Position numbers and translations under genes: made by a program. Under the pieces are notes generated by a model, which saw nothing but the letters and a program-made list of their open reading frames with translations, was not told where the DNA came from and did no database searches. Positions 918-62,471 of a stretch of 64,000 nt of DNA are shown one piece after another (the first letter of the stretch is position 1; each line of letters starts with the position of its first letter). The stretch is from positions 310,001-374,000 of the forward strand of contig JALMLS010000516.1 of NCBI GenBank assembly GCA_038496445.1, written 5' to 3'. Source of the DNA: Trichosphaerium sp. ATCC 40318. Taxonomy: Eukaryota > Protista > Tubulinea.

Positions 918-2631
918 TTAGAAAAAGGTGTGTGTAAAATTTGTTTCTTTTAAGACACGTACCTTTACATAATATACCACTGCTGTAATTATAATGACAA
1001 TAGCTATAACACCAAATACAATTATTAGGGCTCCCCACCAACGTATCCCGCCAACCAGATTCTCCTGGCAAATGTCTTTGACTGCAAAAACTACAGACAA
1101 TGTTGTTTCGGTATACTCTGAACTACCTATTGTAACGTTCTTACAATTATCTTCTGACACTGTATGGATTGTTGAGAATTCAGATGTCAAGCAATTGTAC
1201 TCAAGCAAATCACGCTTTTCTCCGTCCTTCGGAGGCGTACCAATCTTTACCAGAAGGGTTCCATCCTGAGAATCAAGGCAGCCTTCAAAGGAATTTGGTT
1301 AGGGATACTAAAAACCATCACAGCCATACCGGACACTGTAATAGTAGCATCATCGGTAACTGTCAGAGTGCTATTTGTTACATTAAGGCCACCTGATATT
1401 TCCGTAGGTATAATAACGAGAATATCCTCATCAATGACTATGTCAATCTAGCAATTTTATTAATTCCATCAACAAGTATTAAGCTCACTTTTCGAGGTTC
1501 AGTGCGATTTACAGGAACAAATTCGTTAATAACTTCCTCTGCTGAAGATGTAGAGTCAGATTACAATTGTGTAAACAAAGAGAGGTATTATACCATATTC
1601 CATAGCCTTCTGGAGTAGTTGACGTGTTGATTGTTTGATCATCTGATCATTTATGAATACTGTAGCATCGCCAATAAGAATAACCCTTCCTTTGCCTGTT
1701 TATTGTTAAGCCCACAACACGACACATGAAAAACGCGTACCCAATTCAACATCAACTATGGCAGCATCTTTTTCATCGTCTTTGTATGTTGCCACAACGC
1801 TAGCGTTTGTACTTATAGAGAATCTCACTAACTACTATAAGTACAATACTGAGAAAAATAAATAAACAGTACCTCTATCATTGACAAACTCAGGATTGTC
1901 AGATAAGCTATCTACTATCGGATGCGGAGGGTCTGGAATATACACCTAAGTTCATTTAATTCTTCAAAGCGCAAAGTTAATACTAGTACCTCGTCTCTTC
2001 CAAAAACCCACCAATCTTTCCTACATGATCCATCACATTGTTGAGGTGTTATACCTGTTGTTAGCGTTATGAGCTGAGGTAGAATCAAAGATTCTTGCCT
2101 GGTATAGAACTACAATAGCTGTGGTTGGGTTCGTCGCACATTAGGTAAGCAACATGACCTTCTTTAACCCACTCCATAATAGCAGACTCCTCATTATTTT
2201 CTTTCATAGCTCCAGTAAATAGAACGTCTTGGTCGTATAGGGTTGAATTATTGAGCTCTGATACTAGTGTAACCGTGTGGCCACTGAACTCTGTATAATA
2301 GTTAATACGTTGACGCTGATACAAAAAGTAAAGAAAGCGTACCAAGCGCTTGTCTGGCGCCGTAATATTGACCGCCACCAAACGACCATGACAATCCGAT
2401 GATGCCGTATGGGTCCCTTTAAGTTCATTAGTTCTCTGACTGTCCATAGGACGGCTTTTTTAGGTTACAAGATAGACCGGTTACAAAGTGAAATAAACAA
2501 AAAAAAAGTCGGGCCTTTTGGGCGTACCTGAACGTGTCCGGTACTACTACTTTAAGGCAAATCACATGCGCGTGGAATATAGATAGCATAAATAATGGGA
2601 ATAGTAGCCTACGAAGCACAGTTTGTTCCAT
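918..2631 (-). CDS. Multi-exon type I membrane protein of unknown function
   Basis: Signal peptide MEQTVLRRLLFPLFMLSIFHAHVIC, about 10 short GT-AG introns, Cys-containing ectodomain, C-terminal TM helix WWGALIIVFGVIAIVIIITAVVYY followed by a basic stop-transfer stretch. Confidence 0.7.
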
Positions 2632-3533
2632 AACGCCACAGTTTCAGCTTCTAGAGAGTGTTGACACGTGTTTGACAATTTCTAAAGTTTTTAAGTATTC
2701 TCGAAGTAGAAAGAGAGCAAATCGGACTTTTTTGCTTGTAAATGTACAATAGTTGGTGTGTACAGGCTTGTGACAAATATTGCTTTCCGTCACGTGATGG
2801 GATAGGAAATAAACCCAAAATACCACGTGTTAAGTCACTTGGGTGTTAAGCCAATATTGGAAGCCACGTACTACGTTGCAATCATAACATAGTCGCAGTT
2901 GCTACCAATGTTCCAAATTGTGAACAAAAACCAGTTTCACTGGTAGACTCATATTTACCGCAGCTTGTTAGTTAGAATAAAATTCAGTATTTGTTGGTAG
3001 TTGCTTTGTGTTGTTGTTACAATATTGGTTGAGTCCTGAAAGTCACAAAAGACGGATACAATAATTCACCAAACCTTTTTTTGACGCACAAAGTAGTGGC
3101 CTTAGTGGCCGAAGTGTTTAAATTGGTACAACATGATTTACCAGAGCTAGCATTCGTTAACTCTGACTATTTATCATACTACTCTTATCTAGCAATCTAG
3201 ATTGTCTGCTAGTGGCTTAAAATATAGGCTTAGCCAAAGGGAACAAAACTCAGTCAGCCAAACTATTGTTCTTCCGTTATGAATACAAGCAATATTCGTA
3301 TTCATTGTCCTACATGGCATATTCATGAATATTATTCATGAATATTCACCGGCATTTTATTTCAAGGATTGTGGAGCTTTAAATTTGTAACACATATGCT
3401 GTTGTCACTTCACAGGAATCCTCGTTTTTTCGCCACAATCAGCAAAGCATAAAAGCCCAACAATCCAACAAAGTCAAATTGCACAATTCGACAATACAGT
3501 GGTTCTAATACAATTTATTGCGACTACTTCTTT

Positions 3534-4741
3534 TTAAGTCAAGTTATTGCCATTTGGCGTCACTTGAATGGACTTTTCGTTGCCTTGGGCCATATCTACG
3601 GCTGTTACGGTGAGCACACCGTTAGTATTAAAGTCAAACTTTACTTTCATTTGAGGGACACCTATTATCGTTTGTTAATAAACTGTACTTCTTCTGTAAG
3701 TCAGTTTGAGTGTACCTCTTGGTGCAGGGACTATTCCATCGAGGGTAAACTGTCCAAGTAGCCTATTATGCCGTACCATGGCTCCTTCTCCTTCAAATAT
3801 TTTTATATCCACTGCTGTCTGATTATCAGCGAAGGTGGAAAAGAATTGTTCTTTTGAAGCAGGCATCTTTGTGTAGCTAAAACAACAATCAAATGTAAGT
3901 CGGCAGAGCTCGATGCTTGTTATTTGTGTACCACGTTATGAGCTTTGTCATTACACCGCCAACAGTTTCAATGCCTAAACTGAGAGATGTCACGTCCCAT
4001 AACACTAGCTTGTCAATTAGAGCATATCTCGGTTGTGTCAATTTTATACGCTCAAATTGATATGTTCTCGCGCCTGTTATATTGAACTTCATAGGCAGGT
4101 TTCTTGTGGTTACGTGAGCATATCCAGGATATGCATGTCTATTAAACAGACAAGACCCTATCAGTTGTAAACCGCATTGATAAGCTAATCTGCAAACTCC
4201 CCACTGACTGTAAGGAAGCGCGTGGTCCTATTAGCAATTGGGCTCAGCTAACGTTAAAAAAAGCACATGTGCCTTTACTGTTATGTGAATGAAGCCACCA
4301 GGTTTAAGATGATTCTTTGCCGACGAAAAGAAACCCTTGACGAGCGACTGGTTGTAGCATATCGGGCGCTGTATTCCAGTATGTGGGAAGTTGAATATTA
4401 TACAATCAAACCTAGAATTGTTGAAAATAGGAAACAAAAAACAATAGTACTTCTTGGACTTCATGGTACGATGTAAACATGTTGCATCTACCTCAAGTAG
4501 TACACTTGTACGCATTTGAATCAGCTCAGTGATATTCCTCAAGGCGTTTTTGTACTTACTTACAACCACGAGATAGCTATCCAAAGTAGTTGCTGTAATA
4601 TTGGATGCATGTTTGAACGTGGAAGCAAGGCCTATAATTCAATTAAGCTTTTAGAGAATTAACGTCCTCACCCTTGCTAAAAGAGAAATCACCATCACCA
4701 ACAATGAGAATATCTTTATTAGCGGTATAAGGTTTGTACAT
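3534..4741 (-). CDS. Chimeric BMT5-like/DUF2431 rRNA (uridine-N3) methyltransferase domain fused to an Hsp70 substrate-binding beta domain
   Basis: Spliced frame contains [43 protein letters not shown] (DUF2431 motifs) and runs within one exon into [24 protein letters not shown]...FSTFADNQ...[14 protein letters not shown] (Hsp70 SBD); stop at 3534-3536, then AATAAA. The start may lie about 100 nt further upstream. Confidence 0.8.
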
Positions 4742-4975
4742 TGGTAAACAACCCTTTTCTTGCTTTCTTAAGGTTTTTGATTAAGCCACCTCTCTCAGAG
4801 GAAGTGTATGGATCTTGTAAACCAACCTATGTGATATCATGTCATACAGCAATGGTGGTTTATTATTATTGTATCAAAATTGCATAGAAAACTACATCCG
4901 AAAAGATAACGGTTTTTTTATTTGTTAACACGTTTCAACACAACGATACAATTTTGCAAAGTCACTTTAGTAATG

Positions 4976-6256
4976 TTACTCTTCATCAAAGTATTGCCGA
5001 CGAACCCATGGCTCATAGGAAAGCATGAGATCAACATGATATTTTACCTCTGAATTGATATATTTCTTGTTACTTTTAAGCTTGGTCATGAGAGAAGAAC
5101 TTAAAGCTTCATCTACATTTGGATAAACGTCATCACCACAGCAATACCAATCACACATTTTGGATGACTTGTTTTCAAGAATGGCATTGATAATAAGCGC
5201 TACACTTGCGTCTGATAGAATAGGTTGTCCGAGCTCGCTGACATGAATATCGAGCGCACAAAGGTGAGTATTGCAACGCAATCCACGTGATAAGTGTTGA
5301 CCAGCGGCATTCAACTGCAGACCGTTAACTCCTGGCAGTTTTAGTACCTTGAGGGACGGATAATTTGCAGCAATTAAGTCACCAATAGCCTTCCATCCGG
5401 TGGCAGATAATGTAACATATCGTAAACAAAGTTCTTTTAACTTGAAGTTCGATAGAGAAAGCAACGCGCCAAGAAATTCGTCAACATTCGTGCAGCTATG
5501 AATACAGAGAGTCTCAAGTGCATTGTTGGTTTCAAGTGCTTCAGCTATACCTTTTATACTTGCTACCCCTTCAGCTCCAAAGTCGAGTTTACGAATTACA
5601 CAATAAGGGTCTGCGATGAGTCGTTGGATTTCCTTAATATCAGTGCTGGACTCTCCGACATTTTCGAAAGAAAGGCATCTGACCTTGTCAGAAAATTCCA
5701 GTATAGCATCAACAATTGTCTTCACATGATCAGTTACAAGAGTATCAACAATACCTATGTTGAATATATTTGGGTCATTGTTGTCCTTAATAAAGTTGGC
5801 AACAATTGTTGCGTTGCTGCTTGGATTTTCAAAGTCGTTCAATCCAAAACATTTTTCAACACTGTAGACGTCAAAGTCAAGTAACGATTCTTGTTCTCCT
5901 TCTTTGTTTTCTTCAATTTCTATTCCTTCTAATTCATAGCTATATTGTTCCATAAAGTCCTTGCTGTTCTGTTTATTGTACTCGGTTTCCCACACTTGCC
6001 ATTTTCTCATTTTTTTCCACAAGGCCAATTTTGTTTTTGTTTCGTCACTGGAAAATCGTGGATCAAGCGAGACGTTGTAGTCTTCTTTGCATTTAAGAGA
6101 CCATATAAATGATGCTGATACAGCTGATTTGGTCATGTGAGAACATTGGAGTAGTTGGATAATGCTACAACCCTTTATTTCTTGTGCTATAATCTGAAGG
6201 AGATTCTCGTCAATGGATGGTGTGTTAGTTGTAACTGCGGTCATTTTTTTCTTCAT
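4976..6256 (-). CDS. Intronless F-box-like plus RNI-type leucine-rich repeat protein
   Basis: 426-aa ORF; N-terminal IDENLLQIIAQEI...LLQCSHMTK...IWSLKC fits the F-box pattern; repeats such as IAEALETNNALETLCI and LSRGLRCNTHLCALDI. Confidence 0.75.
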   Translation of the reverse strand: MKKKMTAVTTNTPSIDENLLQIIAQEIKGCSIIQLLQCSHMTKSAVSASFIWSLKCKEDYNVSLDPRFSSDETKTKLALWKKMRKWQVWETEYNKQNSKDFMEQYSYELEGIEIEENKEGEQESLLDFDVYSVEKCFGLNDFENPSSNATIVANFIKDNNDPNIFNIGIVDTLVTDHVKTIVDAILEFSDKVRCLSFENVGESSTDIKEIQRLIADPYCVIRKLDFGAEGVASIKGIAEALETNNALETLCIHSCTNVDEFLGALLSLSNFKLKELCLRYVTLSATGWKAIGDLIAANYPSLKVLKLPGVNGLQLNAAGQHLSRGLRCNTHLCALDIHVSELGQPILSDASVALIINAILENKSSKMCDWYCCGDDVYPNVDEALSSSLMTKLKSNKKYINSEVKYHVDLMLSYEPWVRRQYFDEE

Positions 6257-58031: not shown

Positions 58032-60585
<2,554 letters not shown>

Positions 60586-60647: not shown

Positions 60648-62471
60648 TTAGTAGTACTCTAGCAGCATGTCAAAAGAGGCTTTGAATGCAACTAATATTG
60701 TAGGACTATTAGTGTTTGCTGACGGAATATCTGGAAAGACTGAGGCGTCGATAACACGTAATCCATCAATGCCTAATATTACGTTACAAAAAAGTTACTT
60801 TTAGCAAACTGAGCCGTACCCATTACGCGAAGGTTCGTGTCCACAACTGCAAGTGGATCAGATGGTATACCCATTTTACACGTGCCAGTAGGGTGTGATA
60901 ATGAAGCGGAGAAGTTAACGATGAAGTTCTTGAAGAGGTTGTAAGCATAAAAACTTGATTGTTGTAAAAATATAATGTAAAAATATAATGTACCTCTATA
61001 TCCGCATCTGTCGCTGTAAATGGTAAAAATAGAGGGAAAACAGGCACTCCCAAATCTACAGCATTCTTGTACATATTGAGCGCATATCTGGTGCACATTA
61101 TAGCCTTGTCAAGGTCTTGTCTAGCCAACATAAACTGAGGATCAATAAAAGCGTTCTCTAGTGGATCGAGAGATGCAAGAGTGACGTTTCCTCTACCCTC
61201 AGGTCTCAATAACCCAACAATGGTCGCTCTCAGAGACGCCAAGAACTCGCAACTTGGTCTACCTGAAGTTTCAGGTCCGAAAACAAAGAAAGTAGGTGGC
61301 TGGGTATTTGTTATTTCAGGCTCTGGTGGATCTGGACGAAGGTATCGCAAAAAAATGAGAGGATGATCTTGAAGATTCTGACCAACGCCAGGGAGGTCCA
61401 AGACAACTGGGATGCCCATATCGGTGAGGTGCTGTGCAGGTCCAATACCAGACAACATCAAGAGTTGAGGTGTTTTGAATGTACCAGCAGACACAATAAC
61501 TTCCGCGTTCGCATCAATTGTGAATGTCTTGTTCCTTCGGATAGAAAATACTTCAACACCAGTAACACGTGATCCATCAGGAGAAATGATGAGTTTAGTG
61601 ACAAGGTGGTTCAGCATCACTTCCAAGTTGCGAGGTCGAGCACCAACCAAAGGTCGGACAAATGTATCGTATGTCGTCTCCCTTACAAGGTACTCGTCGC
61701 CTTGGTCAGGAGGGAATACGAGTTGCTCCATGGAAGAGATACCATACTGATCGCCTGAGTTGTATCCGGCAGAGTTAAAAGGAAATCCAGCGGCGGTTGC
61801 GGCTTGCACCATTTGATCAAAAAATGGTACGTTTTCTGGAAGGGTGTATACTCCCATTTTCCTTTCTGTAAAGTGACGCCAAAGTCCTAGTCTATTCCAA
61901 GACCATCTCGAATCGCCAAGGTGATTAGCTAATAAATCCCAATCTTCCCTATTTCCCCAGAGATGAGCCATTTGATTGTGTGTGTTGCATCCACCCGCTA
62001 TTTTTGCTCTTGGTATGAAAATCTCGCGGTTGGCAAGTCCTGGTTGAGGTACAGTATCGTACTCCCACTCCATGAAACTAAACTCTGGACTCCTAAACAA
62101 GCTTATCAGTAAAAAGCACAAAAAAAAAAAAAAGAACTTTAATTTATGGCGACAACATTTGTAAATTTCACGTGCCTTTGAACGAACACAGAGCCATTTC
62201 GAGCATCCCATATCGGTACTTCAGAATCGTGACCTCCTGCTTCGATTAACAAGACAGTTTTGCCTCTGAGCTTGGAAAGCTGTGATGCTACGATAGAACC
62301 CGCTGTACCGCTTCCAACGACAATAAAGTCATAATCTAATAAAGAGTTAACCTTTTTTAATTTTTCCTTTGCCCAAAATAAATAGGTAAGCTTACTTGTT
62401 CGAGATACTTTTGTTTCGGCAAATAGAGCCAAGCACGCGATTATTAGAACAAGCACGTGACCAAAATTCAT
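60648..62471 (-). CDS. Secreted GMC oxidoreductase (choline dehydrogenase/glucose oxidase family)
   Basis: Signal peptide; [62 protein letters not shown]. Confidence 0.93.

Follow-up and report, generated by a model that had tools for sequence, protein, structure and literature searches.

The 64,000-nucleotide window analysed here (C29:310001-374000, corresponding to positions 310,001 to 374,000 of contig JALMLS010000516.1 from Trichosphaerium sp. ATCC 40318) belongs to a genome of 70 Mb in 642 contigs, all of which was searched. On its minus strand, the window carries a chimeric gene in which a BMT5-like (DUF2431) methyltransferase domain is followed by the beta part of an Hsp70 substrate-binding domain (SBD), SBD-beta. 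The BMT5-like family (PF10354) was matched with 92.9 bits, against a gathering cut-off of 24.7, at 4629-4267 (profile positions 15-128 and then 136-167), and the consecutive minus-strand exons after it matched HSP70 (PF00012) at positions 382-501 of 599, which correspond to SBD-beta. With the two Pfam families in consecutive exons and spliced RNA contigs linking them, the fusion proposed in a preliminary description of this DNA proved to be real. Regarding its origin and transcription taken alone, it is highly probable that the chimera is a genuine, transcribed, lineage-specific gene.

In a six-frame search of the genome, the chimera scored 120.9 bits and ranked at the top of about eight BMT5-like loci. 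The motifs GDGDFSF, FNFPH and YPGYAHV were all encoded in its genomic open reading frame (ORF). The closest paralogue, C32, showed 48-74% identity per exon and common intron positions, and TYQFE closes the domain in the paralogues C32 and C136 too. The tails after TYQFE were different: that of C136 was hydrophobic and tail-anchor-like (transmembrane-like), and that of C32 was proline-rich with a CCC motif at the end. The BMT5-like part of the chimera is old. In addition, at least seven further BMT5-like loci, including C32, C136, C1 and C13, were present, and their C-terminal tails varied; the C13 locus held in-frame stops and may be a pseudogene.

The RNA evidence consisted of Logan contigs from three runs of one public sample, among which X1 was clearly cDNA. 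Rare variants are lost from such contigs, isoform abundance is not quantifiable with them, the filter also omits some records, and the isoform evidence comes from X1 alone. The X1 contigs on the chimeric gene contained eight skips with zero mismatches, which were GT-AG on the gene strand except for one GC-AG. The joins 4050 to 4004, 3932 to 3876 and 3716 to 3661 placed the methyltransferase and SBD exons on a single spliced transcript. Transcription across the junction, for which RNA had been named as the check, was confirmed, with contigs passing through to a 3' end at 3484, about 30 nt past AATAAA, and none stopping before 4025. The introns of the gene were 39-55 nt long, and both introns inherited from Hsp70 were spliced as introns in the RNA. 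At the GC-AG intron, the joint had a 3-nt ambiguity, and only the +1 reading yielded a known intron type; the splice product, ...HITVK joined to DHALPYSQW, was in agreement with the paralogues. Previous gene models with five introns, giving ORFs of 321-326 aa, were replaced because the RNA joints disagreed with them. Further, X1 contigs 2 and 3 shared exactly 30 nt at 3714-3743, at the last intron. This overlap suggests a branch of the assembly graph and could reflect a minor alternative isoform, for instance one with retention. The features of the locus are collected in Table 1.

Table 1. Features of the chimeric gene, of the copied segment and of its parent, in window coordinates.
Feature	Position	Strand	Evidence
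Chimeric gene	3484..4741	-	ATG 4741, cDNA 5' end 4737, stop 3536-3534, RNA contig 3' end 3484
Exon 1, BMT5-like N-terminus with binding motif	4672..4741	-	RNA piece 4671/4672-4737 and paralogues
Intron 1, 40 nt, GT-AG	4632..4671	-	RNA joint
BMT5-like coding exon, continuous in all paralogues	4451..4631	-	Contiguous Pfam match 15-128 and paralogue alignments
55-nt exitron, GTAAGT...AG, within conserved methyltransferase coding sequence	4505..4559	-	RNA joint 4504>4560, no overlap ambiguity
Intron, 39 nt, GT-AG, position common to paralogues	4412..4450	-	RNA and paralogues
Exon with GGFIHITVK motif	4273..4411	-	Pfam, RNA and paralogues
Intron, 45 nt, GC-AG (non-canonical donor)	4228..4272	-	RNA joint
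Last BMT5 exon, ending ...YPGYAHV...GARTYQFE	4050..4227	-	Pfam, RNA and paralogues
New 45-nt in-frame GT-AG intron spanning the fusion junction	4005..4049	-	RNA joint
Segment copied from Hsp70, inverted on the chromosome, sense within the chimeric gene	3529..4028	-	DNA alignment
SBD-beta exon a	3932..4004	-	Pfam and RNA
Hsp70-inherited intron, 55 nt	3877..3931	-	Alignment with 59699-59750 and RNA
SBD-beta exon b, equivalent to DnaK residues 415-467, with pocket residues F426, V436, I438	3716..3876	-	Pfam and RNA
Hsp70-inherited intron, 54 nt	3662..3715	-	Alignment with 59912-59963 and RNA
SBD-beta exon c and stop TAA (3536-3534)	3534..3661	-	Alignment and Pfam
AATAAA signal	3519-3514	-	Sequence; 3' end of the RNA contig at 3484, about 30 nt beyond
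Hypothetical relic of an ancestral last exon, Q-PLYCRIVQFDFVGLLGFYALLIVAKKRGFL-stop	3410..3504	-	TTAG acceptor 3508-3505, phase-1 donor 4049
Parent Hsp70, full-length, intron-rich, cytosolic-type, with nucleotide-binding domain, SBD, lid and C-terminal ...VEDID	58032..60582	+	Source 59605-60096

The DNA alignments (MAFFT and BLASTN) showed 80-84% identity between the chimera from 4028 (possibly 4059) to 3529 and the Hsp70 gene of the same window from 59605 (possibly 59578) to 60096. According to the whole-genome DNA search, the segment exists in two copies only, that of the chimera and that of this Hsp70. A start of the homology at 4059 (CAATT.TGAGC) was considered and set aside, chance or microhomology being the probable cause; C32 and C136 have TYQFE as well, with the same codons. 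At the other end, the homology faded about 5 nt past the stop of the chimera. The stop TAA corresponds to the parent codon AAA, at the boundary of SBD-beta and lid where lid helix A starts, and thus the lid is cut off. The actin-like ATPase domain of Hsp70 is not present in the chimera, as the homology begins only at 4028-4059. The inherited introns were 67-69% identical to those of the parent and had accumulated about four indel events over 107 nt, whereas 375 nt of exon aligned without gaps. Since both parent introns are retained at identical positions, a copy made at the DNA level, and not by retroposition, is supported. The preliminary description had aligned 3534-4025 with 59605-60096, had argued for a DNA-level copy from the positions of both introns, had noted exons free of indels next to drifted introns, and had placed the new stop at the end of SBD-beta with AATAAA just after it; all of this was confirmed. 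Moreover, the codon differences that it had counted for the middle exon, 11 synonymous and 8 replacement, were reproduced exactly. The parent Hsp70 is unusual in its linker, LLWDVT, compared with the usual LLLLDV, and in its C-terminal end, ...VEDID and not EEVD.

The junction had been described as reading straight from the methyltransferase into the Hsp70 linker within one exon. The RNA disagreed with this, since a 45-nt GT-AG intron (4049-4005) excises the junction in frame, taking out 16 residues and leaving L in their place. The remnant of the Hsp70 interdomain linker lies inside these 45 nt and is thus missing from the mRNA. The acceptor AG of this intron is derived, because the parent has ATAT at the same place. 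The 55-nt exitron is the other new intron. Its stretch encodes the family pattern KY..A..NI..L, and it is a continuous exon in C32, C136, C1 and C13. When retained, the 45-nt and 55-nt segments leave the reading frame open; each is spliced with GT-AG ends, and only the spliced forms were assembled as contigs. With the 55 nt kept and the 45 nt removed, a product of 309 aa results. In the paralogue C32 (C32:92116-95382, about 1640-1690), GTAAGT was found at the codon matching the exitron donor of the chimera, with an AG 46 nt downstream.

The selection on the copied segment was estimated with several methods. By the pairwise Nei-Gojobori method on 125 shared codons, the synonymous distance (dS), the nonsynonymous distance (dN) and their ratio (omega) between chimera and parent were 0.42, 0.126, and 0.30, respectively. 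Five other Hsp70 paralogues of the genome, in a gap-free alignment, were used to polarise the amino-acid changes, of which 17 were derived in the chimera and 4 in the parent, with 8 being ambiguous. When dS was split equally between the branches, the Nei-Gojobori estimate of omega was 0.51-0.56 for the chimera (bootstrap 95% 0.28-0.97) and 0.04-0.11 for the parent or background. A three-taxon codon model rejected equal omega (p 2e-8 to 2e-7), with a saturated outgroup branch. Because this unconstrained model was unstable and its outgroup branch saturated, a clock between the two copies was imposed in a further model. The constraint on the copied SBD was about 30-fold looser than that on the parent (omega about 0.6 and about 0.02, respectively). 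Furthermore, drift was simulated at 0.15-0.21 substitutions per site with an indel rate calibrated on the introns, and an open frame with four splice dinucleotides and no indel was obtained with a probability of at most 5e-4; the outcome was still unlikely when the indel rate was halved. In our reading, the SBD of the chimera stayed translatable for a large part of its history, with the constraint on it strongly relaxed.

The SBD-beta of the chimera aligned gap-free to six Hsp70s, and the sandwich with its hydrophobic pocket appears to be retained. With the numbering taken from a PDB search, in which residue i of exon b is DnaK residue i+414, the chimera-specific changes were clustered at DnaK-equivalent positions 413-418 (P to T, S to C, N415Y and I418M), 445 (R to G) and 478-480. 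R445 faces the lid. The pocket was kept at the DnaK-equivalent I401, T403, F426, V436 and I438, with V at 404 and M at 472. In DnaK, K414, N415 and D481 are SBD-beta contacts clamping the ATPase domain (PMC8215388). The pattern of changes would fit a clamp freed from its allosteric duties.

The following origin of the chimera is highly probable. A piece of Hsp70 of about 0.5 kb, located 56 kb away and containing an exon end, two introns and the first lid codons, was duplicated as DNA. It was inserted directly after TYQFE, at the 3' end of an old BMT5-like gene, in an orientation that is inverted with respect to the chromosome and sense with respect to the gene, and it displaced whatever C-terminal tail that gene carried. 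Because the paralogues carry different tails after TYQFE, the piece replaced or cut off a variable tail. The locus is transcribed as a single mRNA, in which the inherited Hsp70 introns are still spliced, and the acceptor of the junction intron arose by a substitution after the copy. The productive reading would give 309 aa, with the full methyltransferase domain followed by SBD-beta and without the ATPase domain, the linker and the lid. The copied clamp has stayed open, indel-free and spliceable, with replacements clustering in the loops that dock on the ATPase domain or the lid and with the pocket kept. If the protein is made, SBD-beta might serve as an ATP-independent, fast-exchanging tail that binds hydrophobic peptides in place of a targeting tail. 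The fusion protein would be limited to an exitron-retaining form, because the assembled mRNA loses 55 nt of the methyltransferase coding sequence; it would come from such a minor form only, with unproductive splicing as a brake, or would no longer be made. A minor exitron-retaining productive form may exist besides the assembled isoform. This is the best explanation of the locus as a whole, and with some fusion protein being made, it is put forward tentatively, as nearly balanced but leaning to the doubtful side.

Two histories of the insertion fit this origin. The piece may have been inserted into the coding tail, and the chimera at 4049-4029 weakly resembles the tail codons of C32. It may also have been inserted into an old last intron of about 46 nt, whose remnants would be 21 nt and 25 nt; such an intron would agree in size and in splice phase. 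A short ORF at 3410-3504 (-), outside the RNA coverage, has a hydrophobic stretch and KKRGFL and is tail-anchor-like; it might be a last exon that the ancestral gene once used and that was then given up, for which the indication is weak, and no homology to the tails of the BMT5-like paralogues was found. A capture mediated by a transposon was rejected, with no terminal repeats or transposon marks flanking the copied segment. A dispersed repeat of about 126 bp was located outside this segment, at 3271-3396; it has an internal palindrome, resembles a miniature inverted-repeat transposable element, and is present in at least 40 copies in the genome with 75-88% identity. X1 and X2 contigs touched this repeat with loose ends at 3271 and 3310, indicating that copies of it are transcribed somewhere.

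Several observations weigh against a fusion protein being made and used. The ATG at 4741 is absent from the cDNA molecule obtained, because its 5' end is at 4737, four bases inside the ORF and 3' of the A of the ATG; at 4737, the X1 contig runs into a sequence that we take for a SMART-type template-switch oligo in reverse complement. The 55 nt are missing from the sole assembled isoform and, as their number is not divisible by three, a stop follows 52 codons after ATG 4741. Through the removal of the exitron, the GxGxFSF motif for binding S-adenosylmethionine (SAM) and FNFPH fall in different frames of the observed mRNA. In this mRNA of 921 nt, the ORF containing the SBD is 230 aa long and starts from the sixth AUG (MKSKKFDC...). 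Moreover, the depth bins are consistent with neither new intron being covered, and the contig runs through the two joints without a break. The mRNA form isolated, from the contigs of a single sample, has a premature stop and no ATG. Regarding selection, 7 of the 53 positions that are invariant in the parent and the paralogues were changed in the chimera and none in the parent. The three-taxon codon model, with its saturated outgroup, kept omega=1 (p 0.24-0.75), and the clock codon model gave an omega of 0.60-0.69 for the chimera and 0.017 for the background, with p 0.08-0.20 against omega=1. The gene had been called intact in the preliminary description, which holds for the genomic ORF, being open, and not for the observed mRNA, in which the 55 nt are lost and a stop follows after 52 codons. 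It had also been called a selected new gene, and this is not shown, as omega on the chimera branch, at 0.5-0.7, was far above that of the parent (0.02-0.05; p<1e-6) without being significantly lower than 1 (p=0.08-0.2). A dN/dS near 1, named in the preliminary description as a refuting result, was thus neither demonstrated nor rejected. That the fusion of enzyme and clamp is intact and selected is not established, because the sole mRNA form seen is unproductive and the constraint on the clamp is weak; its protein output and its usefulness are unproven.

The same observations may be explained by a chimera in decay, in which the fusion had been tolerated, or had at one time been of use, the frame of the methyltransferase is now lost at the RNA level through the constitutive splicing of a GTAAGT...AG intron that arose by mutation and through a start inside the ATG, and the SBD is drifting. 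The assembly of the frame-broken isoform alone, with its 5' end at 4737, is what such decay would give, and so are an omega of 0.6 that is indistinguishable from 1 and the replacement of invariant residues in the chimera only. However, the genomic ORF is open over 309 codons with a BMT5 domain score that is the highest among the paralogues, the SBD has neither indel nor stop and all splice sites are kept after a dS of about 0.42, and the contigs leave room for a minor productive isoform. On balance, decay is a doubtful explanation, although one of some weight. The opposite extreme is the preliminary description in full, with a constitutively expressed, positively selected rRNA methyltransferase bearing a peptide clamp as the main product. 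The intact genomic ORF, the in-frame junction, the splice sites that are kept and used and the retained pocket residues agree with it, but the assembled mRNA is unproductive, the constraint is about 30-fold relaxed compared with the parent with no sign of positive selection, and the Hsp70 linker is spliced out, which makes it distinctly improbable.

In another explanation, the working product would be the 230-aa protein from the internal AUG (MKSKKFDC...), composed of the C-terminal half of the methyltransferase fold and SBD-beta. No other ORF in the observed mRNA is longer, and the SBD is in frame in it; the product would be without methyltransferase activity because it has no SAM-binding motif. 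Five upstream AUGs with short ORFs come first, half a Rossmann-type fold would be unlikely to be stable, and the conserved N-terminal exons would have no reason for staying intact; such a product is very unlikely. It is hardly credible that the junction is an assembly artefact or that the Hsp70 piece is a 3' untranslated region open by luck. For luck, it may be said that the model with omega=1 was not rejected, and for an artefact nothing was found. The frame, the splice sites and the lack of indels have a probability under drift of at most 5e-4, and in the RNA contigs, as an independent line of evidence, the BMT5 exon is joined to the SBD exons at GT-AG boundaries with no mismatches. Because the RNA contigs splice across the junction, an assembly artefact and transcripts ending before it were ruled out. 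The proposed origin, with a minor productive form, may be extended to a more specific function, which we consider unlikely. The 55-nt exitron would be a regulated switch between an unproductive mRNA and a 309-aa methyltransferase in which a lidless Hsp70 clamp replaces the membrane or targeting tail. The clamp could guide the enzyme to hydrophobic segments that are unfolded or nascent, for instance on ribosomal particles, and this would be one case of a wider reuse of SBD-beta by this protist as a portable adaptor module.

The fusion was also searched for elsewhere. When a 105-aa piece spanning the junction was compared by phmmer with 1.84 billion representatives, 7 matches were obtained, each to one family only, in what is an insensitive test. 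A homologous-protein search with a 132-aa BMT5-like piece gave no match, the length window of the search leaving out fusions. The metagenome scan gave a single distant BMT5 fragment at a contig end. In the papers searched, nothing relevant was found on DUF2431 paired with Hsp70 or on chimeric genes with the Hsp70 SBD. The result was in agreement with the preliminary description, to which no account of this fusion was known, with no two-domain protein among the phmmer matches and none in the papers searched.

The neighbouring genes of the chimera were also inspected. Upstream, at 4976-6256 (-), lies a single-exon ORF of 426 aa with a leucine-rich-repeat-like (LRR-like) look and no Pfam match at E<=0.01. 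This gene is transcribed, as shown by an X2 contig at 4904-5289. Since this separate contig of the LRR-like gene stops at 4904, the chimera is not a read-through product. The next gene downstream gave a highly covered transcript at 2600-2803 (-), with a 46-nt intron at 2682-2727 and a contig end at 2803. A long single-exon ORF at 60823-62211 (-) was GMC-type oxidoreductase-like, as judged by eye from its translation.

Should the fusion protein be produced, it would be a case from nature of an Hsp70 peptide clamp that works without ATPase or lid, attached to an unrelated enzyme as a plug-in module for binding, and would help in thinking about the reuse of chaperone parts. Regardless of this, the locus shows cleanly, and in a form that can be dated, how a gene arose by the capture of exons at the DNA level, how an intron was created exactly at a fusion junction, and how coding sequence is spliced out in an organism whose introns measure 40-55 nt. 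The chimera is also a warning, as its intact genomic ORF overstated the coding content of the mRNA. The kind of event is already known, both for a chimeric gene formed by partial duplication at the DNA level and for coding sequence turned into introns or exitrons. The new details are the pair of a BMT5-like domain and SBD-beta and the intron at the junction.

The methyltransferases with a BMT5-like (DUF2431) domain include yeast Bmt5, the enzyme for m3U in 25S rRNA, and FDXACB1 is another DUF2431 fusion. The chimera is like other members of the family in its full domain, its motifs, its paralogue intron positions and the TYQFE end, and is different in having Hsp70 SBD-beta as its C-terminal tail. 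Compared with the SBD-beta-only constructs, which are sufficiently stable for structures to have been solved (DnaK 393-507 with 115 aa, PDB 1dg4; others with a 150-aa SBD), the chimera has essentially the same boundaries and has kept the pocket. However, it is a natural fusion to an unrelated enzyme, without ATPase, linker or lid, and the equivalents of the N415 that clamps the nucleotide-binding domain and of the lid-facing R445 are replaced. Exitrons are introns inside coding exons (PMC10985678). For instance, the removal of an exitron from Or88a of Drosophila yields a non-coding transcript (PMC10990081). The new introns of the chimera are similar, being open when retained and having GT-AG ends, and the removal of the 55 nt abolishes the coding of the full protein; the alternative use of both forms is the mark of exitrons, whereas the chimera is known in the spliced form only. 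Young chimeric genes formed by DNA-level partial duplication or exon shuffling are a known class in flies, plants and mammals. The chimera is in agreement with this class in its retained parent introns, its nearby source on the same chromosome, the replaced 3' end of the recipient and the relaxed constraint on the captured part, and is different in the junction that was turned into an in-frame intron and in the new domain pair.

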